Assembly (NCBI RefSeq): GCF_006345805.1
Contig: NW_021831849.1
Location: forward strand, 186,001 to 250,000
DNA: 64,000 bases
Direction: 5' to 3'
Source: Octopus sinensis
Taxonomy: Eukaryota
Under the pieces are notes generated by a model, which was not told the DNA's origin, made no database searches, and saw only the letters and a list, made by a program, of their open reading frames with translations. Shown in pieces: positions 8,164 through 52,276 of the stretch. Every line of letters begins with the position of its first letter. Within the stretch, counting starts at the first letter, position 1. A program made the position numbers and the translations under genes.

Positions 8164-8621
8164 TTTGTCCACTGGTCTATCAAAATTAATCATTAGAACC
8201 TTCTAGAAGAGTTTTAGTGTTTATATTGGCTGTTTGGAATTTAAGAGAAATACACGTATCTGTTTAAAATTGTCCAAAAATGTGGTTTATTTGTGACAGA
8301 ATGTGTGAACTAAAAATATTTTGTGGATGAATAGAGTAAAGCCAGTACCACTAAACCAAGGTGAGGTAATTTGGGTCGAATTGTGAATTTTCAATTATTA
8401 TTTGATCGGAACCTTAATTTCTGAAACTTACCAAGTTGAAAGAAATGGGTTGGACTGATTCTTCCCAGACCTATTATTGCTTATTTTCAATTTTAATTTT
8501 CTGCTGTGGTATAATTGGGCAAATAGAATCTAAAAACTACGAATTATTTAGAAAATTGTGACTCACCAATATCAATACAGCTTAGCAGATTTAACGGGAC
8601 ATAGAATATTGTACTACTTTA

Positions 8622-9494
8622 TCTGAAGCCATGTTCTTCCTTCTGCAGGACAGGAATATTTTCTTCCGCGAGCTTGGTTCGAAATGCCCACATTGCAAAT
8701 CTTCTAATAAGACAGTCGACCATTTGGCAACTCGATGCAATAGAATGCTTAATTCCGATTATACAAGGCGACATAACGAAATTGTTAAATTCATACACAT
8801 GCACCTATGCAGAAAATTTGGATTCAAAAAATCAAAAAGGTTAAAGACTCACTCTATCCAAAGCGTAATTACCAATGATCGTGCTGAATTACGAGTTGAC
8901 ACTACTATCCCTACCGAATCAAAAATTCAATATAACAAGCCGGACATTTTCCTATACGACAAAAAATTAAACCACATATGGCTAATAGAGATTGGAGTCA
9001 CGTGTGTGGATAATTTAAAAGCAGTTGAAGTTGAAAAACTTCATAAATATGATATCCTGGCAAGTGAATTAGAAATCATTTACAAAGCCAAAGTCAAAAT
9101 ACTTCCGATTGTCATTACCTGGGATGCGATCGCCTCCAAGTATTTTAAAATATACATGGATTTGATTGGCATTAAAGGCAGTGTTCTGGCATACATCCAA
9201 ACGACTGCATTAAAGAAGACGTTGGAAGGAATGTTCGTAGAATATAAACATGGTTTCGAAGACGTAATGACTAAAGCATTGATTCTCAACAAAGATTATG
9301 CAGTGTGGAACACTCACCAAAGGGGAGCTAACTCGATGAAGAGGAGACATGATGAGGTGACAGAAAACGAATACTCTGAGGAAGGACAAAATAATAGCAA
9401 GAGGATCACGAAAGATGATGGTGCTGTTCAGGAAGGCCCAAGACCAGTAAATTGAAAAATTTAATTAATCTAACTTTTAATTCACGCCTTATTT
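8622..9494 (+). mobile_element. 5'-truncated RLE-type non-LTR retrotransposon, copy 2 (zinc knuckle + PD-(D/E)xK endonuclease, open ORF 8631-9455)
   Basis: CPHC...TVDHLATRC zinc knuckle, YTRRHNE, KPDIF...IEIGV...K.HKY RLE motifs. Possible degraded TSD tattgtactacttta (8607-8621) / tatggtactatttta (9495-9509), 13/15 identical. Confidence 0.85.
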
Positions 9495-10042: not shown

Positions 10043-13000
10043 TTAATCATCTAATTGGCAAATCGCGGCAACACTTCGATTAATCCAATGATTGACTGGT
10101 TTATCATCAGAAATCGGAATTTCGAGAAATCTTACAAAATTTGTCGAATGTCCAGTTGTAGATAAGACACCCCTACGACTAGTTGTTTTGTAAATCGGGC
10201 ACGAATATTGAATTCTACTTTCCACGAAATCACTTTTCACCGGTTTCAGCCAAATCTTAAAACATATTTCTCAAATTAATAATACCACTGGCAACTGTTC
10301 ATATAGTACTCTTGGAAGTGATTCAGCCAAGGTCATAGTAGAAGCATCCCATCTAGCACCTTCTAGAAACAACCCCTTGAATAATCTAGAGAAAATTCTC
10401 AAACATTGATCAAAGCTCCGTCCTCGGGCTTGGACAAACATTCTTGACTTTCTGAGGTGAACTGGAACACGTATTTAATCAAATCGATGGATATTCTGTA
10501 TTTTCGGGCATAATTTTGGCTAACTCCTAAACTTGTGAACATGGTAAAGGCATACCTGTGAGGAAGGACTGTGTAAAGTAAAATCCAGACAACCAAAATA
10601 TTGTTGGCGGTCCATTTTCAATCCAATTTTCAAAAAAGTGCAGTCTGAGTGTTAGATAATGTGTCAAACCGATCAAGAAGGTCGTTTATATAACTTCCCA
10701 AAGGTTTCAGTGAAGGATAAGATTTCGATAGCCAGGCTGAAGGGACTTTTCCAATAAGCAGTGAATCAAATATTCCCTCCAATTCTTGAGACATTACAAC
10801 AAATCCTTTGATTGCCTTGCATAAAATTCCAAGAGATGTGGATATAGTCGATGTGAGAGAGTTGTAGCGAATCAGTTCTTGTCGAAGAACAGTGTTCATT
10901 GACTCGTTGTATAGAACTGGATATGTCAATGAGACTCTTCCAATGTTGAACTCATTTGGCAATTTGCTCAAAATATCTGTCGCCAAGTCCATCACAGCCT
11001 CATTGGCGGATTTGTCCTTATTACTAGATTCCCCGGGCTGTGTCGACAAGAATTTCATCAAAAGCTACATATAAGGGTTTAACGACCTTACAGTCTGACT
11101 TTCGTGATAATCTTTGGTAATGTTAGCATTATTATGTAGACCAAATACATCGGTGCTGTATGTTGTCGGAAGGTTTTTGATATATGAGATATAGTTGTCG
11201 TAGTTCCCATCAGCAAGAGTGTGATAATCCCCGCTTGTTGATAGACTGCAGTAATGTATTATATATAAACCAATATTCCTCTGACTCAATCAGTTTGTAG
11301 TTAAAGAAATTGCCTAGTAAAGAAAGTAGTAGTCTTCTGTCTTTATCATCAGTCACTCTCCCTCCATAGTTACACTCCCCTGTAAGGTACACAAGTGCGT
11401 CCAGAGGGACATTATCGTAGTCGTTGATTAGCATCTAAAATAACACTTCTTAATAACCCGCATTTGTCGTGAGCTTATCACAAGGTCTGAATCGTTAAAT
11501 TCGTAAGGAATGTTCCATCCAAGCGAGCCAAATTGTTTTCTTTCTTGAACAACAGTGTGAAAAAAGCACAACCCGAATAACATCCGATGGAATTTATCAG
11601 GCTAAATTATACTCAAATAGTTGAACTTTGTCACAATCGTTATAAAATCCGGCTTCGTTGAAGGGACTACTTAAATATGATCTGAGGAGATTAGAACGAA
11701 GTCCGCTGGGAGGTTCGTTTGTGATTTTAATTCCATTTTGTAAGATGCTTACGGGAAAGTGCTCTGAAGGATAACTTGTCAGCCACAGTCGGAAATCAGG
11801 GTGAATTTGTCCGGGAATCATGACCTTAAATTATATTAGAGCTGAGAATGGATTACTTCCTGGCATATTCTATCTAAATTTGGCATCCAGCTGGTAGCCA
11901 AGTGACAATTTTGGAGTATAACCCAATCCCCCACTTTAATGGCTTCGTCAATCATTTTGGCTGCAATAACTCCCTAAAAATAAATCATTTAAATATATAA
12001 ACTTGTCCCTGTCCAAGTGAAATGCTATGTATATTTGTCGACTGTTTATATCCAAGTTCCATTCCAAATTTGAGAAGGGAGTGCAGAGGGTCTGCTCCAG
12101 GCGACAATATAAATATGAGCGGAGTTGTGGATGCAGAATCGGCAAAAATTGACTTCAAATCAAACGTTCCGGACTCAATAAATTTATTTCCAAGGTTATT
12201 GATTATAAATTTTTGGATGGCGGGAATCAACTTGTCCCCACGGAGACATCGAAGAATAACAAGAAATTCCAGTTCAGTGCAATCTTTGTATGGCTCTGGC
12301 AGTGGACTGTTTTGAGGATCTTGCAGTTCATAAAATGATTTCCATTTTTCTCCCTCTTGGCGAATAGCTACAAATGTAATTTATTTAATCAATACAGTCA
12401 GGAAACTGACTTAGTTGATCAATATCTCCCGCTCGTACAATTTCTCCCCATGACTTATCTGAAAGCCAACCCTTTTCAGGATTCTCTTGTAAGTTATCAA
12501 GTGCGACTCCTCCAGTCAGGAAAAATCTCCACAAAGTGTCGTCAATTTTATTTCTTGGATAAATTATAATATTATACCGTCCTTTGAGGATTCCAATGCA
12601 GAGCATAAAAGAGAAAAGCAATTTATCTTTCTCAAACAGAGATCGGCACACATTAGCATATATTGACTCTGTGAAATGAGAAGTAATCAGCTCGATTCGT
12701 TTGTCGATGAAATCCGACTTTTTGCTGGTCTCAATAGCCTGGAAATACATTTTTAAAAACAACTTGAATATAAAAATTTATGAACCAATGAAGGGAATAT
12801 TGGTACATAGGATCTATAAAGGCCAAATCAGAAATGCAGAAGAAGAGGACTGTTGAATGCTTAGATACTGGAACATAGAGATTCCTTGTTTTATCAATTT
12901 CATCTTCTGTTTTTGAAGCAATTTCTTGTTTTGCTGCAATTTCTTCAGATAAAATTTTTGAGGACGAGAGTATTTCAATTGCAGTTTCATCCTCGAGAAT

Positions 13001-16000
13001 ATTGGCCTTAAAATATCAAACAAAAAATTTACTTTCGAAGTTGTCAAAACCTGTAAAATTTTATCCTCTATTTCCTTGAGCTGCTTTTTATTTTCAGCTC
13101 CCTCAATGATTAAACTGTTCTTTTTTTCTTCAAATTCAGGTTTTTCTTTGGCAGCGACAATTCCCAATAACTGATCCTCTAATCCTTGCTCGGTGATCAT
13201 AAAGTTGATGAGACAAATCTTGACTGATACTTCCGGCAAATAGTGAGGGTTTCTGAGGTTGGTCGTAATGTACAGACGGAAATCCTGATTGTATTCTATT
13301 GACTTGTCCCCCAGCTTAATATAGTCCACTCCTTGTTGTCTGAATATTTGCTTCATCAGAATTGGGTCCAGCAAAGGATCGAGTTCTTCGCCAACATTTT
13401 CAATTAAAATCGGCTTTCCGAATTGAATACAATTTTCCATATGTTGAAGGTATTTTTTGTCAGTTAATTTGACGACACAAAGACCATTGTCTTTCTCGAA
13501 ATTTTTGATCCATTTATTGGCCTGCCCTAAAAAATGTTATTTTTTCAAACCCAACCTTGAGGGTCGATTATTAATGGCCAACGTAGAGAATTTTTAATTA
13601 TAATTCCATTATCAGTACTGAAAGTGTCCACTGGGAGTCCGCATATTTGCCATCTACGAATAAGGACATTATCTCCAAGTATGTTAGTCATTGAAAAATT
13701 TTGTGAACAAGGAATCTGTTTGTCAAGACACAGACTGTGCCAATCGTTTATAACAGTCTAAAATTTTTAATATATTGTTACCTTTCTGTAATAAGTAGAG
13801 AACGCCCCCAAATAAGAAATGACCCCAGCAGAGACCAAAACATCTCCAGGCACGTCATTATAAAGATTTTTTAATGTTTTCACCATATCTTGCCATCTTT
13901 CCCTTTCTCCTCCTAATCCCCCAATCAGCTTCCCTGCTCTTGTCAGCTTTTTGGAACATTGATCAATGTTTTCAATAAGGTTTTCCTTTTTGATAGTCAT
14001 CTCTTCAAGCTGGTCGTTTAATTTCTGTAATTTATCCTCGACCTAATCAATAAGTGGGTTAGATAAGACTGTTTTTAGTTGCAGTTCTTTTTCCTGCAAT
14101 GTTTTGATCTGGACAGCAAGTTTAGCCTCAGCAATGGCTAATTTTTCTTTTTTGGGGGCCACGACTTTTGAGACTCGATCATAAGAATCCATTGCTCTGA
14201 CCCAGGCACAAAGACCTTCACATGCAGTTGAGGCTTGTTTGACAATGCCAGGGACAAATTGTGGATCGGGGATATATTTTTCTCTTATTTTTCGAATACT
14301 GTTGGGATTTATGTCGTCCTTGTCAAAAGATTTTAGCCGATCGATGAATTTCATGTCGTTAAGAACTTTTTGTGATGAACTCCAATAGTCGTCAATCATT
14401 CTTCCACTACCACTGGGGTCTGGCTTTCTTTCCGGCTTGACGTTGAGCATCACACATATGGCCTCCATTACAACTTTTATAATCAGAGGTGGATTCTAAA
14501 TATAACTTTTAAATGAATTTTTCCTTCATCGATTTAACGTTTGTAATATCAGATGGCTTTAAGGTATCCAAAGCCGCCAAGGCAGCTTCAAGTTGAGGAA
14601 GAGCCTCAGCCAAATCTGTCTCGCATTCATCTTTGATGGCTTTTGATGCCATTGCTGCCTCATTTGCAATAGCCTTATCAGAGGAAACAATCTGCACTTT
14701 AGGAAAATGATCAAAACTTGTCTTTTGGCATCAACTTCTACAGTATCCTCCTCAATCCTGACAATAAGTAATTCGGTTTCTTTCGAGGTTTCTATAAGCT
14801 GAGGTTGCATTTCAGTCAATTCTTGCTGCATTTGAACAACCTGAAATTATGACGACAAGCAATACTTGTAATGAAGCATCACTTAATTTTTCTAAACCAG
14901 TCATGTAACGGTTTTTGAGGGTTTCAATCTCTTTACGTTTGAATTTTAGTAAAGATTTGAATGTAGATACTAACTCTAGATAGGACGTGGGGGTAACATA
15001 GTAGTGTCTTTTCATTTCATTAAAATATCTAGTTTATTATTTTATTCGCTCTACCTGGCTGATAAGGTTATGATATCACTGTGGAACTGCTTACAAGTTG
15101 TAACAATTCCATGTCTATAACTTTCGTCTAAATTAATGTCCTCAAAAAATTTATTCGCCACCATTTCTAATGCATCGTCAGGCCAAGTCTAGAAATAACT
15201 TTTTGGAAAAATAAACCTGAAACCAGTCAATAGTGCAACAATTTATAAGAGATGGAAACATTCTTAATCGATTTCGGAAGGAGGCACCAATTGGACTCAT
15301 TGCCAGAACTATATGAAGATTTTTCTTCACTCTATCAATAAAACAGTTGTATAAAATTAATGGAGTGGGGTCATTTTTCCGATTCTAAATTTTAGAGAAG
15401 TCAAGGTACCTCCGCTTTGAAAATTGATTGCATTTTTTCTAAAATTTCGGCTTTTTCGTCAGGTTGGAATAGATTTGGAAGATCGCCTGAATTGAGTATC
15501 ATTCCAATATCTTCCATAAAGCTCTCTTCTTTAATTTCAATGTCACTGAACAAAAATACGATTGGTTTTCCATCGATTCCAGCTTTAAACAAGAGCTAAA
15601 AATGTTGTCACATAGAAACTTTTTTCATATCTTCGCGCCAATCTGTTATTGAATAAAATCGCGTCATTTCGACTTGGAAAATAGAATAGTCTGCAATATA
15701 GGCGGCCATTTTAGCAACAGACTTTCTCCCACTGCCACCAACTCCTAAATGTATTCAAAAAACTAGAAACTAACCAACTAATAGACAATGACCGTTGTCA
15801 ATATTTAATACGCGAGATACTCTTGAAATGTGTTCGATTGCAAATTTAAACATGACAAGATTCATAGGATTTTTGCTCATTTGATTATATTCCAGCAAAT
15901 GACTACAATTTAATCAGATATGACACTTTTCCATCATTCTAGTAAGTTCTGTTAAATCTGACATTTCATTATAAGAACCCTCTTCATCCATTTTTTTAAA

Positions 16001-23990: not shown

Positions 23991-24367
23991 TTTAGAGTTG
24001 CTATGTTACAAATGGTTTATTAGATTTTGGTTAAACATCATTAAAATCGACAATTCGAAAAAAATCGACAATTTTCTTAATTTACAAATGTTTTAAAACC
24101 CTCATTTGTGTAACCTTACTAATCAAAGCCTTGATTGCTTATATTTTCAATTTCACTTTTAGAATAAAGCTAGTCATTTAGGCTTTCAGAAATTTTTATT
24201 TTTGCTTTGTGGCTATTTGAGACAGTGTCCCGGGAATAATTTTGAGATTATTTAATTCATTTTAAAAACTTTTTAGAGACCATTTTGATGTTAATTTTAG
24301 TGATCTACATGAAGAATCTACTACTATCAGTTGAGACACATTATATTAACGACACTGATGCCACTCT

Positions 24368-24432
24368 GTCTGTCGACGTGGGTCACCTTCTCGCGGTGGC
24401 AGATGATAGTTTTATACTACGAAAAGACCCAC
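24368..24432 (+). ncRNA. HDV-like self-cleaving ribozyme (nested double pseudoknot)
   Basis: P1 gtctgtc (24368-74) / ggcagat (24398-404) with G1.U wobble; P2 gtgggtc (24378-84) / gacccac (24426-32); P3 acc/ggt; L3 ttctcgc; P1.1 UC/GA; P4 tagt-tttat-acta; catalytic C at 24420 in J4/2 cgaaaa. Confidence 0.9.
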
Positions 24433-24519
24433 AACTACTCCCATGTCGGATCGGATCAATTCCGCAACGTCGGTGGCAGCAGAGCAGGCGCGAAGCCGTT
24501 GCTCCCAAGGACCTCTTTG

Positions 24520-24573
24520 CTTATCAAACTCGCCGTTCTTCTTTCCGGAGACATTGAACCAAATCCTGGCCCC
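24520..24573 (+). other. 2A-like StopGo ribosomal skipping peptide
   Basis: LLIKLAVLLSGDIEPNPG|P fits the D(V/I)ExNPGP consensus (24550-24573), in frame and directly before the APE domain. Confidence 0.88.
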
Positions 24574-26992
24574 AGCAAGAAGAACCTATTTCGTATCTTG
24601 CAGATCAACATCAATGGGGTTGCTCAGAAGACTGCTGAACTTTATTCCTTCTTGGAGAAGCACGACGTAGACATTGCTTTGGTGCAAGAAACGAAGCTCT
24701 CGACCAAAAATCGCTTGCCAGACCAGGCTCTGTAAATAGGGGTGGCCTACTAACTCTTATCAAAAAATCCATCCTGTTCACTAACTGTACCTCCCAAGCT
24801 TACTCGCTAATTGACAACAATCCAGTGATTGAAATGACAGCTATAACTGTTTCTACAGGGTCATCAACCAGGAGATATATACATACCTCCTCACTCGTTA
24901 TGTCCTCATGGATGGACCTCTTCTATTCAAAATTTCCAGTCCCTCAACAATGTCATTGATATGAACGCAAAGAGCCCGATATGGCTAAAAAATCAATCGC
25001 TTAACTCAAGAGGATCTCTACTATTCGACCAATTTGATGGGTTAGTTATCCTCAACAACCCCTCATCTTACACCAGAACACCGTCAAGGAAAGGCGACGC
25101 AATTTCTTCTCCTGACATCTCGCTGTGTACTCCAATTCTGGCCCCTGTTACTTTTTGGAAGGTCATTTACGACATAAATTTTAATCACAATCCGATTATT
25201 ATTGAGAATGCCCTAAAATCCAACATCGACATTCAACTGCGTTGTTATACAAATTACAAAGGAGCTTCCTGGGACGACTACCGTCTCGCTCTAGAAAAAT
25301 AATTGAATGATTTCGACATTATCAACTTTCGTTCGACTGACGCAGCAGTCAATTATCTCAATGTCATTTCCACCTCCAAAAAATTCATTCCTCAAGGAAT
25401 TATACAAAATTTCTCCCAAAGTTACAGCCACGTTTCGATCGATGTCTCAAAGGCGTCCCTCGGTGTGGACTCATCAACAAAATTTTAAAGACAGACCTAA
25501 ACTCAAACCTCAAATCCTTGCAAACTTCTTATCGGGTCGAATGAGATACGTCTCTCTTATGGACCACTGTTCAAAACAACGATATCTTCCAAATGGAGTA
25601 CCACAGGGTTCTGTGTTGTCTTCTTTCCTGTTCAACTTATAATTACATGACTTTCCGGTTAATGATCCAAACAACTTGACATTATCTTACGCAGATTACA
25701 TATCAGGCTCTCTCAACATCCAGCAACAATTATACTCCGTTGAGAATTGGTTCATTGAAAACAGACTTGAGGCTTTGCCCTCGAAATCATTACGCCCTTT
25801 ATTAAGTTATGCGAGTCCAAGCTGGGCGCCCTGCCTATCCACAAACTCGACAATGGCACTTCAATCAGTACAAAACAAGGCCATGCGCACAATATCTGGG
25901 TGTCTGAAATCAACCCCAATTGATAACCTCCACTGTGAAACAAACCTTTTGCCAATTTATGATCATCTAAATATGAGAGGAACGCAATTTTTATTTGCAT
26001 CTCGAATTCCCTATCATCCATGTTCTGCTCTAAATGTGCTAAACGGAAATTCTCGTTCAATGAAGAACACGCCGGCGAATCTATATTCCCGGATCCTTGC
26101 CAAAATGGACATTCGATCTCCCCCTTTTGTCCCATTTGCGAGCACACAACTGCCCATCTATTCCGCTGTTCTGGTCTTCTTTCGCTCCGTAAAAATTTGT
26201 CATTCACTCCCCGGAGGTCCAATAGGAGCAACCTGGGAGGGCGCTGTTGTTTCTGCAAGCTGCTGGTCTCATAACTTAATGTGAGATCGGGGTTATGGAA
26301 CAACAACAACTCTATGGTATTTTATCTACTAGGTATTTGTTGAATTTTGACACTGTATTAAAAATATCGATTATAGATTGATATTAAAAATGGAATACAC
26401 CAAGCTATACTGTATAGATGGGGACAAGGCTAATAACTTCTATAAATAAAGTTGAGTTTACTGGAGCATAAAATATCGTACTTGACAGTCAAGTACAGAA
26501 CAGCTTGACATCTAATTATTTTACTTTGATGAAAACAATTAAAAAATTGAATTTTATATATTGATCTAGATCACAGAGAACAATCACCCGATTCCCTTAT
26601 CAGTTAGATGTCGAACTACATTTAGATTTATTTAATCAACAACAAATATTAATAATATTTACCAAGTTCAGGTAGTACCCTGTAAAACTGAAATCACCCT
26701 ATGAGAATTAACGAGTGATAACCTGGGAACAAAATACTCTGAGCTTAAGCAAATCACACTCGACGTGAGTGAAAAATTTGAAATAAGCAACAGAAACCAC
26801 GTTTGTAATTAAGTGCCCATAATATCATTGTGTGCTAGAGCAGACTAATCATTTACTATCAGACAAGTGCGCCATTATAATAGTTTAATAGACTAGAATC
26901 GTAAATCATTAATGTCATTAGTCTGCGCAGATAGACGTCGAAACAATCGAATATTATAATTTTTCACTGTAATTTAGTGGAATTATCGTTGG

Positions 26993-28505
26993 ATGCTGTT
27001 TGTTTTTGTGTTCTGCTCATTTTTTGTTAAATCTGATGACCAATGTGAATCTGTGAGGATCCCAATTTGCAAATCAATCGGATTTAACTTGACTTATCTT
27101 CCAAACAGTTTTGGACAATCGACACAAGAGGAGATTATGGACAGAATTGCAACAATTTCTGATCTTTTGCAGTCAAATTGTTCTCCTTTTACAATTGAAT
27201 TTGTATGCTCTACATTTGCGCCAATTTGTAGCAAACAAGTATACTTTCTTAAAATATTTCTAGCACGGAAAGATCTTTATTCTCTATCCATGCCAGTCTT
27301 TGTGTCATAAAGTATATTCTGATTGTACTACAACTATTTCCCGTCTAAATTTTGACTGGGACAAATATTTTAGCTGTGAAAAGTTCAAAACACAAAACGA
27401 AGCACTTTGTATTCATAATGATCATCTAACTTCAACAAAAAAAATTTCCGAACCACCAAATCTAAGCAATTGCCCCAATACTACAATACAAGTCCAGACA
27501 GAGTGGGGATTGAAGTGTCTCAATCCATGTCCTGCATCTTTAAAAAATTATTATTTTGATATTTCTAGAAGAGTTTTGCTTGGATTCTCGTTTTGTTGTT
27601 TTATTCTTTGCCTTTTCTCTCTGATTGGACTCTACATTAAACAAAACCGACTTGAATATCCAGAAAAGCCGATGATATTCGTTATCTCCTCTTCAATGCT
27701 ATATTCTTTATTTTTTTCTATTATATTGTCCATGGCAAACAGATTCCTGTTCTGCAGATTAAACGAAAAAGGACTTTACTATGATTCCTTAAGCAGTACT
27801 CAGTGCATCGTAATTTATGGTGTTCAGCAGTTTTTTGCAGCTGCTTCCCACATGTGGATTCTGGTACTAGCAGTGTCTTGGTTCCTGTCATGTTCGCAGA
27901 AATGGGGACAGGAAAGCATAAGCAAATGGACAAATTTATTTCATTTTTCTGGTTGGTTTATTCCGGCTATTCACGCCGGGACTGGGGCTTCCACAAAAAT
28001 GTTGTCTACAAATTCTCTATCGGGGATGTGTCAAGTTGATGAAGGTACTCAAGTCGGATTTTTGTATGCTTGTCTTCCCTATTTTATGATTTCCTTTGCA
28101 ACTGTGCTCCTTCTATCTTTGGGAAATAGAGATTTAAAAAAAACTAAAAAGCAACTACTTGGAAGTGGTTTAAATATTAACAATTTGTCGAGAATTCTTG
28201 TGAAATTTACAATGTTTACCTTTTTTTATGCAACCATGTCTGCATTTGCGATTATTTTGAAAATAATTTACTTTTTCCCAAAAACTATTTTTGGAAGTGA
28301 TTCCGATCAGTTGGAAGAAAGGTCATTTTATTTTTTGATCCCTTGTATTGAGATTTTGATTAATTTTGTCATCGGAATTGTCTCCTCGCTTTGGCTATGC
28401 AGTCCTCTTTGTCTCGTAACTATATACTATAAAATCAGAATTTACATGGCTAAAAAATCTCGTCCGTCTTTATACTTTTACTCTAATTCTCACAGAAGCA
28501 TCTGA
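26993..28505 (+). CDS. FZD: Divergent Frizzled-family receptor (CRD + 7TM), one 25-nt intron
   Basis: Signal peptide; CRD CESVRIPICKSIGFNLTYLPN...FVCSTFAPIC...PCQSLCHKVYSDC; YPEKPMIF; WILVLAVSWFL...KWGQESI; FHFSGWFIP; SLSGMC. Confidence 0.88.
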
Positions 28506-30027: not shown

Positions 30028-30482
30028 TAAATTTTCCTTATTAAACCAATAATAAATTAATAGTTAATCAGAAACTAAGCAGATCTCACTCCAGCTCGCT
30101 GATATCCACTCTCCTTCTCTTGGAAGAAGAGTCTACTTCCAGCTGCCTCTTACTCCCCACTACCACATCTGATTCAACCATTGCATCTTCTTTAGCATTC
30201 ATTGGGTCGTCTTCATTTTTGCATGCCATCTCCACATACCGGTTGGAAGCAGAAGCGTATTCTTCACCAGATACCTTCATTCCGTGCTTGTGTTCGATCA
30301 TCATACTCTCGAGCGTTCCTTTCAGTACAACGGATTGGATGTATGTCCTCGTTCCTGCTTCAATAGATAGTTTCTTCATATAATTTTTGAAGCATTTCGA
30401 GACAACTCCATCCCATGTCATAACCACAGGAATTATTTTTACTTGACAGCTATGCAGAAGCGAAAGCTCACTTGCCAATAAG
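30028..30482 (-). mobile_element. 5'-truncated RLE-type non-LTR retrotransposon, copy 3
   Basis: ORF starts mid-domain (LLASELSLLHSCQVKIIPVVMTWDG...YIQSVVLKGTLESMMIEHKHG). Perfect 12-bp TSD ttacagacctat at 30016-30027 and 30483-30494. Confidence 0.88.
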
Positions 30483-31299
30483 TTACAGACCTATAAAAGT
30501 TAAATTAAATTATTAGAAGCATTAGTTCTACAAATTAGTTTTTTTCCCCTTAGAAAGATCAAGAAACCGAGATTGGATACTTTTGAAATTAAATCCTATG
30601 CAAAAAACATGTTGCGATTTCGCAGTAAATGAATCCTTTCTCCTGTTGAAGGAGAGTTATTACTCACCATACTAGAGTCGGCAACATTTTCACAAATTTT
30701 ATTAGAAACTGATGGATAATAGGCTATCTAGTTTAACTTATTCAGTTTTTTGTGGCTAGATTTAATAACAATTAAAGTGAATTTTTATCGAAATACATTC
30801 TAAAATTCAAAAGACGGATTTTGATGACCGATACCTACCCGCTGAAAGTGTGGCCAAACAATGTGCCTATACAATTCTTGCATCGATTTTTTTACAATTT
30901 TGGATTTATAACGAATTTTAGCCAGTTTTGTGAAAATTATTAAAACTTTCCTGTTTAGTAGTACATTTCTAAGTCAGTTAGTTAAATAAATCGTATCAAA
31001 AGGTTGTGATATATTCATTTCGAGCACCTCTAAGTACTCATTGTAGTTTTTGCATAATCAATTTTTTCATCTGTGCATCTAAATCATGTCACCAGTTAAA
31101 ATTTCAATTTGGAATAAGCTTTGTTTTGATAAAAGGAAATTATCTTACTAATACCCAATGAAAAATCATTTTCAATAATTACAGGAAGATCTAGTACTTA
31201 ATTACTTCAGCTGAATTTTTGCCGTCTATATGTTTTGCAATGCAGTAAAGTTTATCAAATCCGCCAAATTCTTGAAACGTCCAGAGTGGAATCCAGTAC

Positions 31300-34388: not shown

Positions 34389-35843
<1,455 letters not shown>

Positions 35844-44599: not shown

Positions 44600-46489
44600 C
44601 TAATTAAAAGCCTGAATCTGTGAAATAAGATGTTTTGTGTACGAAATGTAGTCGAGACTATCAACAGAAAAAATCGTCGATTTGAGTCTACTCTCGTAAT
44701 TGAAGACCTCCATCTTTGACCTCATTCTGAAGACATAGGAATTAAACATAATCTGCTGAATAACATCTTCTATGTCCCGTGTCCCACTCCCCGTGGGATC
44801 ATTGGGGTCAATAATCTCTTCCATCTTACAACCCAACATCTTTTCGGCCATACTATGGAAACATGTCACCCACTGACTATCCGTGTGATCCGCCAGATGA
44901 ATCTGCAGCATAAACCGACGCTTGTATTTGGGCCAATCCTTCTGACACTTTTCACATCGATACACCCCATTGCCCTGCTCTACCAATTTCTTGTTACAAT
45001 CCTCAGACGGACAAGCCAAATAAACACACGTTTCCTTCCGCAAGAACACAACCGATGCCTTGACTGTGTAATACTCCGCTGTATTCCCATCCACACTTTC
45101 CCCTCCACATTCCCCAAATGTCTTCCAATTCACAGTACGCGGTGCAATTTGGTCTTCTTTTCCTGCCAGATTCGAAAACTCAATTTCTGATCCTCCACGT
45201 AAATACCACCCCGCCAGCTTATATGCATCCCGACGCTCCGGGTGAAAGATAACCGTACTATTCGTGCTAGTATTGAGCGAACAGCCATTAAAATTGGACA
45301 GTCGGGCACCTTTTATAGCCACTGTGGGGTGTGGGGCCTCCTCGGTGACCACAAACCTCTCAGCCTGTTCCCCCCAAAGAGTAACAGTCACCACAGAACC
45401 TGCCTATTCATACTAAACACCCACCTGAGTCATCCACCAACTGAATATTCCGTTTTTTTAATTCACGATTGTTCTGTTTTGAGATTATTTCCGTGATCGG
45501 ACTCGACGTGTGGACCACTCCCAACACATCCACCATTCTATTCACAGCCATCTCCCCCAGTTTGCTTATCCTGACGAAATTAAAGTCAATTTCTGGTATA
45601 TTCACGTCAGTTTCTGCACATAAAGTGAACTATGAGAGTAATTTCCAACCAAACCTGAGTTTCCCGTGTAAATGTCATCTCATAGTCATTCGGAAGTGAA
45701 GAATATTGTTTATTGGCCACTTTTAGACTAGCCTTTGATATAAAATAAATCTGCCCTGTCTCACAAAGGGGGAAAATACTGAAATAATAAAAATAGAGGA
45801 AACCGATCACATTCATCGTTGAATGCCGTGGCTCTGATCTCCCCAGATTCGTCTGTGAGTGTCATTGAGAATAATTTTCCTTCCCCTCTCGAATTAGACC
45901 ACGTTTTGATGTCACTTTTTTGAGTTACTCTCGCTCGGATCATCCATTTGGTTTGATATGGGTTGAGACTGTTGATTGAATGGACTTTACTCTCCACCAC
46001 TGTGGGGGATTGGGGGAAACATGGTCTTTTTGTGGGTGGATTTGATTTTTGAGGGGAAGGGACTGTTGGTTGTCGTTTTTGGTGGATATCTGATATTTTA
46101 AAGGGGGTTGGGTCCCCGATTCTCTGCAGGACTTGGTCTTGTGGACTTAGAATGGCAAGTTCGAATAGAATTAGAATATGTTTGTCTGTTCCGACACTTG
46201 TTAGTTGATAGTTCTCGACTTTTATTATAGAATTTGGGGAAAGTCTGTTTTCGGTGATGAGGTGGCTTTGTTGAGTGCTTAGCATTACTGATGAAAAGTG
46301 GTTCACTCCGTCGGATATTAACAGACGGTAACGTTCGGCTGAGTTAGATTCCGTTGATATAATTTTTTTGTGTCCAAATACCTTTTTTAATTAAGATTTT
46401 ATAGGTTTAGTTACCTGTAAGATTGGATTCTGGACTTTCTCGCCTCTGAATATTTTTTCTATGGCACCACTAGACAGAGAATACGACAT
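44600..46489 (-). CDS. RPA1: Replication protein A 70-kDa subunit
   Basis: MSYSLSSGAI...RYRLLISDG; SLNPYQTKWMIRARVTQKSDIKTWSNSRGEGKLFS; VTLWGEQA; zinc finger YLACPSEDCNKK...YRCEKC. 4 tiny introns. Confidence 0.95.
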
Positions 46490-47164: not shown

Positions 47165-47515
47165 TTTAAGTCAAAAAACGCTGTGAGAAAAGTAATAAAA
47201 TAACTTTCGACGACAGAATTTGTTAATTTCATAATGATAAAATATCAAAAATTTGAAAACGAAACAAATAAAGTATGTTTATGAATACTAATTATCATTA
47301 AGGAAAACATTATACCTATTTTCATACTCTCAAAAAAAGTTCAAAATGAGCTGAATAAAGTGATAAAATATACAACGTGTCCTCTTTGCCATCACAGTGT
47401 TGTTGTGGACGATCGTACAAGAATGGTTGTTTGCTGGTTCTGCAAACACCGATTTTGCAGATTTTGTTATTCTGGCAATCATTTCTACCGTACAGTGATC
47501 AAATGTCATTCGTAA
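47165..47515 (+). CDS. 3' part of a gene with an IBR-like Cys/His zinc-binding domain
   Basis: Exon TTCPLCHHSVVVDDRTRMVVCWFCKHRFCRFCYSGNHF, joined by 25- and 30-nt GT-AG introns. 5' end not resolved. Confidence 0.45.
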
Positions 47516-48500: not shown

Positions 48501-50349
48501 CAGTCAACCCTCTCTATAGTGAACCCTCTCTATAGTGAACAGGCCATATTAATGCAATCTACAATAACAAATATTAGTAATTCTCATTAATATATTATTA
48601 TAAAATGAATACCACGTTTAAAAATGTATAATATCATTTATTAAATATTTTGTGTTCACTATTAAAGAATAGTGAACGTCAAATTTTGTGAACATAAAAA
48701 TATTAAATTTAATATTTTACATATATATTTAAAATTCTTTAAAACGAATAAACTACACGTTCTACAGTTGTTAGCATGGTGGAAAATCGAAAACGCCTGT
48801 CATTTTTTCAAAAGAAGGAAATAATCGAATTTTATCATAAAAATAGACATTACACACAGCGCGATTTATCCCTTTATTTCAATGTTTCTCTGGGCTGCAT
48901 AAAAAAAATTTTGAAAAATTCTGAAGGAATACTTAATGTTCAAGATGACCAAAAAAAGAAGAAAATTACTTGCCCAAGTCTCAACCATTCGACAGAGATC
49001 TATTTGAATGGTTCGTTAAAAAACGATCATTTGGATTTACAATCAATGAATATCTTTTGAAGTCCATGTCTCTAAAAATGGCGAAAGTTTGTAATATTCA
49101 AGAATTTCAAGCAGCAAATGGATGGCTTGGAAATGTAAAAAATCGATATTGCATTGCTTTCCGTGCTTTATGTGGAGAAAATCAATTTGTTGAAACCTCT
49201 GTGATTGAAAATTTTACAGAAAGCCTCAATAGAAAATTAGAACAATATTGTTCAAAAAATATTTTTAATTTGGACGAAACTGGATTGTTTTTTAAACTTT
49301 TGTCGAACAGAACATTAGCTGTTGACTCGGACAAAAATCTGTCTAATAAACCGATAAAAGAAAGAGTAACTGTTATGTTTTGCGTTAGTATGATGGGAGA
49401 AAAACTTGACCCATTTGTTATTGGAAAAGCCAAAAATCCACGCTGCTTTAAAGGAAGAAGAAATTTAATTAATAATTTACAAGTGGAATACAAATCAAAT
49501 AAAAAAGCATGGATGACATATGGTTATTTCTCAGAATGGCTCATAGAATTGAACAAAAAAATGATTTTGCAAAAAAGAAAAATTCTAATTCTACTTGATA
49601 ATGCGACTGTACACTCACGTGATTTAGAGTTCAGTAACATCGAACTCTTTTTTTCCCTCCAAATACAACATCGAAGTTACAACCCCTTGATCAAGGAATA
49701 ATAAAATCAAGACAGGTATAGACAACTCCTATGTGCACACTTGATTGAATTTTATACTAATGATGACAATGTAGATCACGAAAAAGTTACGGAAAAGTTG
49801 AAGAAATTCACTCTATTGAATTGTTTGATATTCATAAATCAAGCTTGGTTAGAAGTGTCGGAATTAACAATTACAAATTGTTTCAAGAAAGCATTTGAAA
49901 ATGCGTTAATACAGAACCTGACAGAAATAGAAGAAATAGATGATGAAAATTTGTTGATTTATGAAAATGATCAAATTGACGACGAAAACTTTATACAAAA
50001 CTTTGCGAGAAAACTAAAACAGCAAGACCAAGTTGAAGAGGAAGATGAAAAAATTTATGTTCCGACACTATATGAAGCTAGTGAATATGCGAAGGCGCTT
50101 GAATTATGGTTTCTTGAGAATGATTATGAACAAAGAGGAAAAGTATACGAAATACAAAAAATTTTAAGAAATTATCAAACTAATCATTCTCAAAAAATCA
50201 CCGATTACATGATTAAAATCTCTAAATAATCTTTGTAATTATACTTTAATATTGTTTATTGTTATTTTGATTCCTTTTGTTCACTATAGACAATAGTGAA
50301 CATGATGTTTTGACGTGGACATTTTGTTCATTATAGAGAGGGTTGACTG
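48501..50349 (+). mobile_element. Near full-length pogo/Tigger DNA transposon with frameshifted transposase
   Basis: 24-bp TIRs cagtcaaccctctctata(g/a)tgaac (23/24); TA duplication on both sides; HTH domains; NLDETGLF; LLDNATVH; frameshifted FFPPNTTSKLQPLDQGII. Confidence 0.95.
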
Positions 50350-50674: not shown

Positions 50675-52276
50675 TCATGCATTCCACAACCTAACAAGTC
50701 CAAATGTACAATATGTGGCAATTATGTTAAGAAGAGGGTGATGACACAAACCAAGTACTTCTCCATCGTGAATCTACAACTCAGATATGAAATCAACCGC
50801 TATCGTCCTCTCCAACTTGCCCGTCTTCATTACAAAACAGTAAAGCATCTTGTCCTCCCCCACCGCGTATATAAACTCACTGCGAGGGGACACAACAGCA
50901 GACACAAGCAAGACTCCCTTCTTCCCAGAATTGAACGTTTTGACGACTTGTCCACTCATATCCATCACAAACAATGTACAGGAATGATTACACACCCCAA
51001 ACTGCCCTCCTGAAAGAGGACATAACGACAGCACAGGTGAATCCCCAGACAAACAAAACGTCTTTAAACATTCACAACTGTGGATATTCCATATTTTGAC
51101 AGTACTGTCCGAGGATGCACTGACTATGCAGTCCGAGAAGTACATTGCACAGTTCACATAGGAAGAGTGACCCAACATTTCCTTTAGCAATGTCCCTGAC
51201 TTGAGACCGTGGATTCGGATTGATTTATCGTTAGAACTACTCAGCAAATGTCCCCCATCCTTAGAAAATTCCATGGACGTGACTGATTGACTGTGGGCAT
51301 TTTCCAACCGTCGAATACACTGCCCTGTAGAAACCCGCCAAATCCCGATTTGCCCCGTCAAACTTCCGGTGGCCAGAAAATGAGAATCTCGGGAAAATGA
51401 AAGAGATATAACAGCGTCTTTCATCATTATGAACTCCTCTTTGTCTTGGTAGGGCAAATCCTTCCTCAGCTTCCCAGTAGTGAAATTCCACACCTCCACA
51501 AACCCATCGACTGTCCCCGTCACCAAATATTCTCCATTTGGTGAGAAAACAGCAGTTTTTACATGTGCTTTCTGTCCGAACTAGAAATTACAGCAAAATC
51601 ATCACTTTGATAGTTTTCCCGCTCTGTGTGGGAATAATGTCCTCCCCCTGAGCGTAGACCACAGCCTTAGCTCTGAAGATATCAATATTATTGCCAGGGG
51701 GGAGCAGTCCCGTCTGTCTCTGCCATTTCAAAGCTTGCCCAATCAGAGACAGCAAACGAGAAGAGGGGACAATTTCTACTTCCTTGGATAAAGAATGAGC
51801 GATTAAAGTCCTTTTTTTATCCTTACTCTCTCCGTATACTCGGGGATCGAATTTAGGATGGGCCAACATTTCTTCCAGGCGAATGTACCTCTCGATTGCT
51901 CTTTCTTTTAGGAGTAGTAGAGGATCGGACTGTCGAAGGAGAGATCGAACAGCCCCAAATTCTCTCTGTTCGATAAGCTCGATGGTGATTTGTTCGTAGA
52001 GGTCCATAAGTTTGTTTTCGGGTAGTTTAAGAGTTTGGACAGTCATGAGTACTTTGTCCCAGTGTCCGTTTATAACATCTGAGGTGAAGGACTCTATGGA
52101 GTCTACAGTGTTTAAATAGACTCCTGACTCTTCCTAAAATGCCATTATGTGATTACTCTGAGGGTTTCGAGAGATTTTAGTAAGTTATTTTCCTTCAAAT
52201 ATTGTTCTATCAATCTGATCACACTATTTCTCTATGAAAAAAGTACTCACTCGGTAGACTCCACCTCGACAGCCAT
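50675..52276 (-). CDS. SMU1: Spliceosomal B-complex WD40 protein SMU1
   Basis: MAVEVESTDVIRLIEQYLKENNL...LNTVDSIESF...GHWDKVL (LisH/CTLH); VPSSRLLSLIGQALKWQ; seven WD40 repeats. 4 introns of 23-27 nt. Confidence 0.95.

Follow-up and report, generated by a model that had tools for sequence, protein, structure and literature searches.

Our analysis of a 64-kb window of the Octopus sinensis genome (contig NW_021831849.1, positions 186,001 to 250,000; all coordinates below count from the first nucleotide of this stretch) confirmed that a complete hepatitis delta virus (HDV)-like ribozyme fold lies at the exact 5′ end of a long interspersed nuclear element (LINE), and that a canonical 2A (StopGo) peptide follows in frame, just before the apurinic/apyrimidinic endonuclease (APE) domain. 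The copy in the window (24368 to ~26308) is a dead, internally deleted copy of a ~3.35-kb LINE with one open reading frame (ORF). For active copies of this family, the sequence comparisons make it likely that the ribozyme self-cleaves, that the ribosome skips at the 2A peptide, and that a short leader peptide is released.

The fold occupies 65 nucleotides and can be drawn base for base as a nested double pseudoknot (coordinates checked by hand), using the definition of the HDV-like class given in PMC4908430 and PMC3774820. Its parts are as follows.

24368–24432 (+): HDV-like ribozyme fold, with predicted cleavage 5′ of G24368; 96.8 bits with our own covariance model R1
24368–24374 (+): 5′ strand of P1, GUCUGUC, paired with GGCAGAU at 24398–24404; the G24368.U24404 wobble lies at the predicted cleavage site
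24398–24404 (+): 3′ strand of P1, GGCAGAU, partner of 24368–24374
24378–24384 (+): 5′ strand of P2, GUGGGUC, forming seven Watson-Crick pairs with 24426–24432
24426–24432 (+): 3′ strand of P2, GACCCAC, partner of 24378–24384
24385–24397 (+): P3, 3 bp, ACC/GGU (24385–24387 with 24395–24397), enclosing L3
24388–24394 (+): L3, UUCUCGC, 7 nt, of which U24389 and C24390 are used in P1.1
24405–24406 (+): J1/4 "GA", the 3′ side of the 2-bp P1.1 (U24389-A24406 and C24390-G24405)
24407–24419 (+): P4 hairpin, UAGU-UUUAU-ACUA (24407–24410 with 24416–24419), weak at -0.3 kcal/mol
24420–24425 (+): J4/2, CGAAAA, with the putative catalytic C24420 at its head, directly 3′ of P4

The helices of the window copy are arranged in the order P1-P2-P3-P3′-P1′-P1.1-P4-P4′-P2′, as the HDV-like class demands. 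P1 contains seven pairs (G.U, U-A, C-G, U-A, G-C, U.G and C-G) and is recovered by single-sequence minimum free energy (MFE) folding, and J1/2 contains three nucleotides (24375–24377). The sizes of P1, J1/2, P2 (7 bp) and P3 are inside the published ranges, which are 6–7 bp from the cleavage nucleotide for P1, a short J1/2, at least 5 (about 7) bp for P2 and 3 bp for P3 (PMC3774820, PMC4908430). Position 6 of L3 is G24393, which is kept together with C24420 across all lineages compared; the L3 guanine and the catalytic cytosine are important in HDV-like ribozymes (PMC3774820). An initial annotation of the window had proposed all five HDV helices, the G1.U wobble, the catalytic C at 24420 and a U-A pair in P1.1 (U24389-A24406), and each of these proved correct on checking.

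The ribozyme is positioned at the boundary of the inserted element, the remaining parts of which are listed below.

24363–24367 (no strand): 5′ target-site duplication ACTCT; the same ACTCT follows the (AAC)n tail, to which its first two bases could also belong
24574–25302 (+): frameshifted remnant of the APE endonuclease (matched by Pfam Exo_endo_phos and Exo_endo_phos_2, weakly in these fragments and clearly in the near-intact copy L034)
25303–26284 (+): remnants of the reverse transcriptase (RT) and C-terminal region with large internal deletions (fragment of Pfam RVT_1)
26285–26308 (+): 3′ end and (AAC)n tail; the ending ...GGGGTTATG-(CAA)n is also found in other copies
26309–26313 (no strand): 3′ target-site duplication ACTCT, copy of 24363–24367

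The window copy keeps both ends but is frameshifted and has lost ~880, 245 and 210 bp internally, according to a blastn comparison with a longer copy of subfamily 1 (sf1). The near-intact copy L034 is ~3.35 kb long and contains one ORF of ~1112 codons (887 + 225 aa) broken by one stop, with Pfam matches to APE at residues 85–298 and RT at residues 584–800 and a Cys/His-rich C-terminus. The order in the element is therefore leader, 2A, APE, RT and Cys/His-rich C-terminus, followed by the 3′ end ...GGGGTTATG(CAA)n. Pfam found no RNase H domain in the L034 ORF; the more distant relatives P0009 and P0010 do carry RNase H. The first 233 nt of the element have 41 matches in the genome, ~20 of which hold the whole ribozyme, and the rest are 5′-truncated, as is usual for LINEs. 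Independent insertions start at the G of GTCTGTCG or GTTTGTCG. Target-site duplications of 5–12 bp directly adjoin G1 in the window copy (ACTCT), L034 (AGCAATGGTTT), L035 (CTCCCCATAG) and L039 (AGAAATTA, with a 3-nt microhomology), while L004 and its duplicates have 1–3 bases missing at the 5′ end. Since the duplications adjoin G1, the RNA that was reverse-transcribed starts at the predicted cleavage site. The coincidence of this site with the element boundary beside a short target-site duplication had been noted before, and the ACTCT on both sides and the independent copies starting at G1 bear it out.

The genomic copies in octopus form two subfamilies (sf1 and sf2), which are 79% identical overall. 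Relative to sf1, the ribozyme of sf2 contains a compensatory change in P1 (C3-G35 to U3-A35), one different base in L3 and one in J4/2, and a 9-nt insertion in the P4 loop (L4) that keeps the leader reading frame. We also looked for the fold in more distant relatives. The closest database proteins, which come from metagenome contigs in ENA, are 35–42% identical and carry GDIEQNPGP, GDVEMNPGP or GIEQNPGP close to the N-terminus. When metagenome contigs were scanned with the 2A and APE alignment as seed, 80 loci were returned, and many of the closest contain an in-frame NPGP upstream of APE. The same fold was found upstream of an in-frame 2A in related metagenome LINEs whose APE domains are 28–38% identical; it lies 118–235 nt upstream of the in-frame NPGP in L061, L062, L071, L083/L099 and L042, and partially in L044. 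The ribozymes of the following relatives are given in contig coordinates.

L061: 100–180
L062: 18–94
L099: 1186–1284
L083 (a relative of L099): 960–1058
L071: 270–337

The flanks of L083 and L099 diverge exactly at G1. The 17 nt before G1 of L062 (CTCAAGTCAAAGACTCA, 1–17) are identical to part of its own P4 (56–72), which could stem from an assembly artefact or from duplication, either tandem or partial.

Comparison among these lineages shows that the pairing is kept while the helix sequences drift. Across sf1, sf2, L061, L062 and L099, 89 of the 90 proposed pairs are canonical, versus 35–54% when the 3′ partner is slid by 1–3 nt, although the helix segments of the relatives were assigned by hand and the counts therefore lean towards the model. 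Most positions of P1 and P2 show two to four pair types in these five lineages. The P2 strands of L061, L062 and L099 are wholly different in sequence and still paired, and the P4 helices of the relatives are hairpins of 18–51 nt with unrelated sequences. P1.1 covaries from U-A to G-C, with "UC" in L3 accompanied by "GA" and "GC" in L3 accompanied by "GC". The core [A/G]CC-U[U/G]CNCGN-GGU is kept in octopus, L042, L044, L061, L062, L083 and L099, and a regular expression for it gave four forward-strand matches in 258 kb, against none on the reverse strand. In L071, which has one U.U in P2, the L3 is UUGCCGU, one base off the core. A cytosine followed by an A-rich J4/2 is present in every lineage (CGAAAA, CCAAAA, CGAAAG, CAAAG, CAAUG, CAAAUC, CAAAGC and CCGAAAU). 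The invariant parts are thus those that form the active site in HDV-like ribozymes, namely P3, L3, the C after P4 and the A-rich J4/2. Single-sequence MFE folding places P1 from nucleotide 1 in six of the seven lineages. With a MAFFT alignment of the 5′ halves as input, P3 was the sole helix recovered by RNAalifold, since MAFFT had aligned the P1 strands out of register.

We assessed how often such a fold would be expected by chance with two descriptors. The loose one, our own permissive HDV pattern, is unspecific: it matched three loci in the window, compared with a mean of 1.3 per window in 30 dinucleotide shuffles of the 64 kb, and on the metagenome relatives it gave 16 forward and 40 reverse matches, which we set aside as evidence. 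Its other two matches in the window, 49232–49291 (+) and 47202–47265 (-), are both AU-rich, fail the strict descriptor and are most likely chance matches, occurring at the rate seen in shuffled sequence. The strict descriptor applies constraints customary for HDV-like ribozymes, namely a 7-bp P1 with the G.U, a P2 of at least 7 bp, a 7-nt L3 with U1 and G6, a Watson-Crick P1.1 on L3 positions 2–3, a C after P4 and AA in J4/2. Its sole match in the window is 24368–24432, with none in 300 dinucleotide shuffles on both strands; as it was composed after the site was seen, this test is not fully independent. A pattern search of the octopus genome gave 15 matches, all of which belong to the LINE family of the window copy, and none in the control. 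The idea that a permissive motif was matched by chance in AT-rich DNA could appeal to the background rate of the loose descriptor, to the two other AU-rich places in the window and to the nested MFE of the ribozyme region, which is ordinary (z = -0.37, a score that is uninformative for pseudoknots). We give this explanation practically no credence, because it is already contradicted by the conservation data: the fold is kept in ~20 genomic copies and recurs with covariation in distant relatives, and the match lies on the sense strand, with its start at the element's first nucleotide. Position and conservation are stronger arguments for the fold than the descriptor statistics.

Together with the ordinary folding energy and the hand-assigned helices, a number of observations weigh against a self-cleaving ribozyme. 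Nested folding favours an alternative inner hairpin, and P4 is very weak in sf1 (-0.3 kcal/mol). Rfam gave no match for the ribozyme in the window at the gathering threshold, and the covariance-model check proposed in the initial annotation went against it, as none of the families, HDV-type ones included, matched 24250–24650 or the ribozymes of six relatives even at E≤10; the HDV-type models in Rfam omit pseudoknots and represent particular lineages. Among the relatives, the homologous fold of L042 (the contig of P0001) at 120–189 is imperfect in P2, which is bulged, and in P4, where a G-G stands at the base. L044 (the contig of P0003) has the core, a wholly different yet paired P2 and a long P4, with no 5′ partner for P1 within 340 nt; it is probably a copy 5′-truncated inside another LINE. 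No recognisable ribozyme was found in L043 or in about eight other 2A-bearing relatives, some of which are on short contigs; the 2A-bearing loci judged by eye to have no convincing ribozyme are L063, L064, L066-68, L073, L075, L076, L085, L092 and L129. Finally, transcription from an internal promoter with its start at +1 would place the 5′ end at G1 just as well.

This last point bears on a different explanation, that the structured 5′ region, whether untranslated or the beginning of the coding sequence, is an internal promoter, a signal for protein binding or packaging, or a platform resembling an internal ribosome entry site, which acts without self-cleavage, the G1 end coming from transcription initiation. 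It would account for the boundary as well as cleavage does and would fit the failure of the Rfam HDV models to score. Moreover, Pr77 of the trypanosome element L1Tc is both promoter and ribozyme (PMC3383444, PMC5814959). A further hint at a signal on the DNA level is an invariant block downstream of the ribozyme.

24467–24516 (+): 50-nt leader block, identical between sf1 and sf2, which holds CGGTGGCAG (24471–24479)

No significant fold was predicted for the block by itself (z = +0.7). The CGGTGGCAG at 24471–24479 is an exact repeat of the P3′/P1′ strand of the ribozyme at 24394–24402, and could serve as an alternative partner for P1 and P3. On the other side, what the lineages have in common is exactly the catalytic set known from HDV-like ribozymes (P1.1, the A-rich J4/2, the G of L3, the cytosine after P4 and the +1 G paired at the base of P1), and the helix sequences drift with compensation, where a mere promoter would conserve the DNA sequence and not the pairing. 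Because the conserved bases are the catalytic ones, we consider a non-catalytic role unlikely and favour self-cleavage.

The second part of the system is the 2A peptide and the leader that precedes it, with the following features.

24547–24573 (+): 2A/StopGo core GDIEPNPG/P, with the predicted skip between the Gly codon 24568–24570 and the Pro codon 24571–24573
24403–24570 (+): leader ORF of 56 codons, from an AUG inside P1/P1.1 to the Gly codon of NPG/P
24376–24378 (+): ACG in the window copy (GACG at 24375–24378); this position is an in-frame AUG (+9, in GATG) throughout sf2 and in most of the remaining sf1 copies
24443–24670 (+): out-of-frame ORF of 75 codons from AUG 24443, private to the window copy

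The octapeptide DIEPNPGP is encoded at 24550–24573, and the Leu-rich LLIKLAVLLS stands directly before GDIEPNPG/P. The 2A of the window copy (LLSGDIEPNPG/P) fits D(V/I)ExNPG/P and is located seven residues before the endonuclease domain. A -GD(V/I)ExNPGP- motif has been used as the probe for 2A peptides (PMC3708506), and the motif is also given in PMC12846837. The 2A is kept in both subfamilies (GDIEPNPGP in sf1 and GDIEQNPGP in sf2) and in P0001-P0003. The upstream hexapeptides AVLLSG (sf1), ALLLSG (sf2) and LLLLSG (P0001) fall in the "LLLLSG-like" class, which is among the four principal upstream classes that StopGo has been shown to require (PMC12846837). The 2A is found 56 aa from AUG 24403 inside one continuous ORF, and active 2As of LINEs are 40–80 aa from the N-terminus (Odon et al. 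2013, PMC3708506). The 2A motifs of L061, L062 and L099, GD(I/V)H(S/P)NPGP, carry His where Glu is usual, whereas the octopus element keeps the canonical Glu. These three relatives share with P0001-P0003 a PHD-like Cys-rich segment between 2A and APE, which the octopus element lacks. We also note that L067 has two 2A motifs, GDIEPNPGP and GDINPNPGP (at 201 and 471), in one frame, 90 codons apart and upstream of APE.

AUG 24403–24405 consists of the last two bases of P1 and the first base of P1.1 and is in frame with GDIEPNPG/P, so the frame and coordinates of the 56-aa leader ending in DIEPNPG/P, as first annotated, are borne out. This AUG had been described as the only one in frame, which holds for the window copy and fails for the family, as the consensus has a further in-frame AUG at +9. 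The overlapping ORF from AUG 24443, to which the initial annotation had also drawn attention, is not a feature of the family, because the AUG is a private mutation of a dead copy: the C-to-A change is found in no other copy, and the others read CCCCTG. The poly-C run just 3′ of the ribozyme varies by ±2 nt among the near-identical sf2 copies L014, L015, L017, L018 and L020. Its length shifts the choice of in-frame AUG, with the P4-loop AUG becoming in-frame in L015, and the variation may be a homopolymer error of long-read assembly.

The first in-frame AUG is at +9/+36 in octopus, +11 in L061 (inside P2), +65 in L071, +76 in L099 (inside P4), +128 in L062 and +135 in L042. As it ranges from +11 to +135 in the relatives, initiation inside P1/P1.1 is not conserved. 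In six of the seven lineages tested, plus L071, the 2A frame stays open all the way from the first three bases, and the P3/L3 core is read in the same frame by octopus, L061, L071 and L099 (T-F-S-R-W and the like). These observations, with weak statistics, suggest from the reading frames that the ORF overlaps the ribozyme as a rule. HDV-like ribozymes have been reported to promote translation of LINEs (Ruminski 2011, as cited in PMC13725137 and PMC4908430).

The main rival explanation accepts both features as real but independent: the ribozyme would only trim co-transcripts, ribosomes would scan to the first suitable AUG, and the 2A, instead of removing a leader, would tune the amount of the ORF2-like protein or mimic a lost separation of ORF1 and ORF2. 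The variable position of the first in-frame AUG speaks for it, 2As occur in many LINE clades with no reported ribozyme (PMC3708506, PMC13405545), and many 2A-like peptides of LINEs lower protein abundance (PMC13405545). However, at least seven lineages, and L1Tc as well, combine ribozyme and 2A at a similar distance from each other, and both the 2A frame open from the first three bases and the shared reading of the P3/L3 core in four lineages speak for a connection, if with weak statistics. We regard independence as a genuine contender, though on the whole a less than even one.

Under the reading that we prefer, in which ribozyme and 2A act together, the RNA of an active copy would cut itself 5′ of G1, which would free the element from any upstream co-transcript. 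The ribozyme would stay on the RNA as a structured 5′-OH end and be copied at each retrotransposition. The ORF would run through the ribozyme, or start inside or just after it, and ~55–65 codons on, at the 2A, the ribosome would skip the Gly-Pro bond and release a short leader peptide, the sequence of which may be dictated largely by constraints on the RNA and not by protein function. The APE-RT protein would then start at Pro, seven residues before the endonuclease fold. Going further, the ribozyme and the 2A may be one ancient module, in which translation starts on the uncapped, self-cleaved RNA, inside the ribozyme or immediately behind it, and the 2A casts off the RNA-dictated peptide to give the endonuclease a defined N-terminus. 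Such a module would predate the split of the trypanosome L1Tc/ingi elements from an unclassified, RNase H-less lineage of the I superfamily in cephalopods and other marine eukaryotes. We put this forward tentatively and consider it rather doubtful at present.

HDV-like ribozymes that sit at LINE 5′ ends and 2As in metazoan LINEs are each well known. Our literature search found no HDV-like ribozyme tied to octopus or molluscs, or to a 2A outside trypanosomes, although the 2009 and 2011 ribozyme surveys were outside this search. The initial annotation knew of no description of such an element in this lineage; metazoan LINE 2As, mollusc Ingi included, have been published (PMC3708506). The host had also been taken for a metazoan parasite, but Octopus sinensis is a free-living cephalopod. 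What we describe is an L1Tc-like layout of ribozyme fold and 2A in a new host lineage and probably in a different LINE clade.

LINE activity in octopus is under debate, and the annotation of octopus transposons gains a small family with ~40 matches to the 5′ end, ~20 of them with the full ribozyme. Should the ribozyme cleave and the 2A cause skipping, the layout of L1Tc would be no trypanosome oddity but a recurrent, probably ancient, LINE strategy, by which single-ORF LINEs would define both the 5′ end of their RNA and the N-terminus of their protein with neither a promoter-defined cap site nor an ORF1. In addition, sf1, sf2, L042, L061, L062, L071 and L083/L099 form a comparative set with one catalytic core, unrelated helices and varied AUG positions. 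This set suits the question of cap-independent initiation by HDV-like ribozymes, a claim that rests mainly on one 2011 study.

The rest of the window contains the following features.

8595–9455 (+) and 30086–30490 (-): ORFs that resemble each other in a motif (…ILPIVITWDAIASKYF… and …IIPVVMTWDGVVSKCF…) and both carry a Cys/His patch; they are probably relics of a further retroelement family
12814–13536 (-): long ORF, by eye exon-like, dynein heavy chain
26978–27310 and 27264–28505 (+): Frizzled-like gene with Pfam matches to the Fz domain and to the Frizzled 7TM region; the LINE lies ~700 bp upstream of it
35241–35843 (+): long ORF, by eye exon-like, beta-tubulin
44600–46390 (-): RPA70 exons, identified by a 100% protein match to an NCBI Octopus sinensis protein
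48949–49701 (+): long ORF, by eye a pogo/Tigger-like transposase
50774–51580 (-): long ORF, by eye a WD40 SMU1-like protein

A word-based homologue search with the 413-aa Frizzled-like ORF brought up no hits at E≤1e-3, an unexpected outcome for a Frizzled.

Among known systems, L1Tc/ingi (Pr77/L1TcRz with L1Tc2A) is the closest in layout. In L1Tc, the ribozyme in the first 77 nt cleaves at +1 and is followed by a 2A in frame with APE (PMC3185411, PMC5814959). The octopus element likewise has an HDV-like fold in the first 65–77 nt with predicted cleavage at +1, a ribozyme that would travel with the RNA, and an in-frame 2A shortly after it, just before APE in a single ORF. The domain order of L1Tc/ingi is APE-RT-RNase H-nucleic acid chaperone (PMC5814959). 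In contrast, the octopus element lacks RNase H, ends in (AAC)n and not in poly(A), has a P1.1 of 2 bp instead of 1 bp, and resides in a mollusc. The L1Tc/ingi architecture assigned to it initially therefore applies to the sequence of ribozyme, 2A and APE, and not to the RNase H (absent from L034 by Pfam) or the tail. With these two differences, membership of the Ingi clade is not established.

R2-type HDV-like ribozymes belong to the same class, with a P1 of 6–7 bp, a P2 of at least 5 bp, a variable P4, the catalytic C and few invariant bases, and the role proposed for them is 5′ processing of co-transcripts and possibly translation initiation (as cited in PMC3774820, PMC4908430 and PMC13725137). 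R2 is site-specific for rDNA, uses a different endonuclease and has no 2A, whereas the octopus family is inserted at dispersed sites and couples its ribozyme to a 2A. Vingi elements likewise have one long ORF and lack RNase H (Kojima 2011, as cited in PMC3708506), but no 2A was found in them (PMC3708506). The mollusc LINE Ingi-1_AC of Aplysia californica resembles the octopus element in its single ORF and in a -GD(V/I)ExNPGP- motif 40–80 aa from the N-terminus, and its 2A is >97% active in vitro (PMC3708506); Odon et al. 2013 (PMC3708506) nowhere mention a ribozyme. Lastly, 16 O. sinensis LINEs have been placed in an unclassified subclade of the I superfamily (PMC10294476), and the family described here may be this "unknown I clade", which we offer as a lead for its classification.

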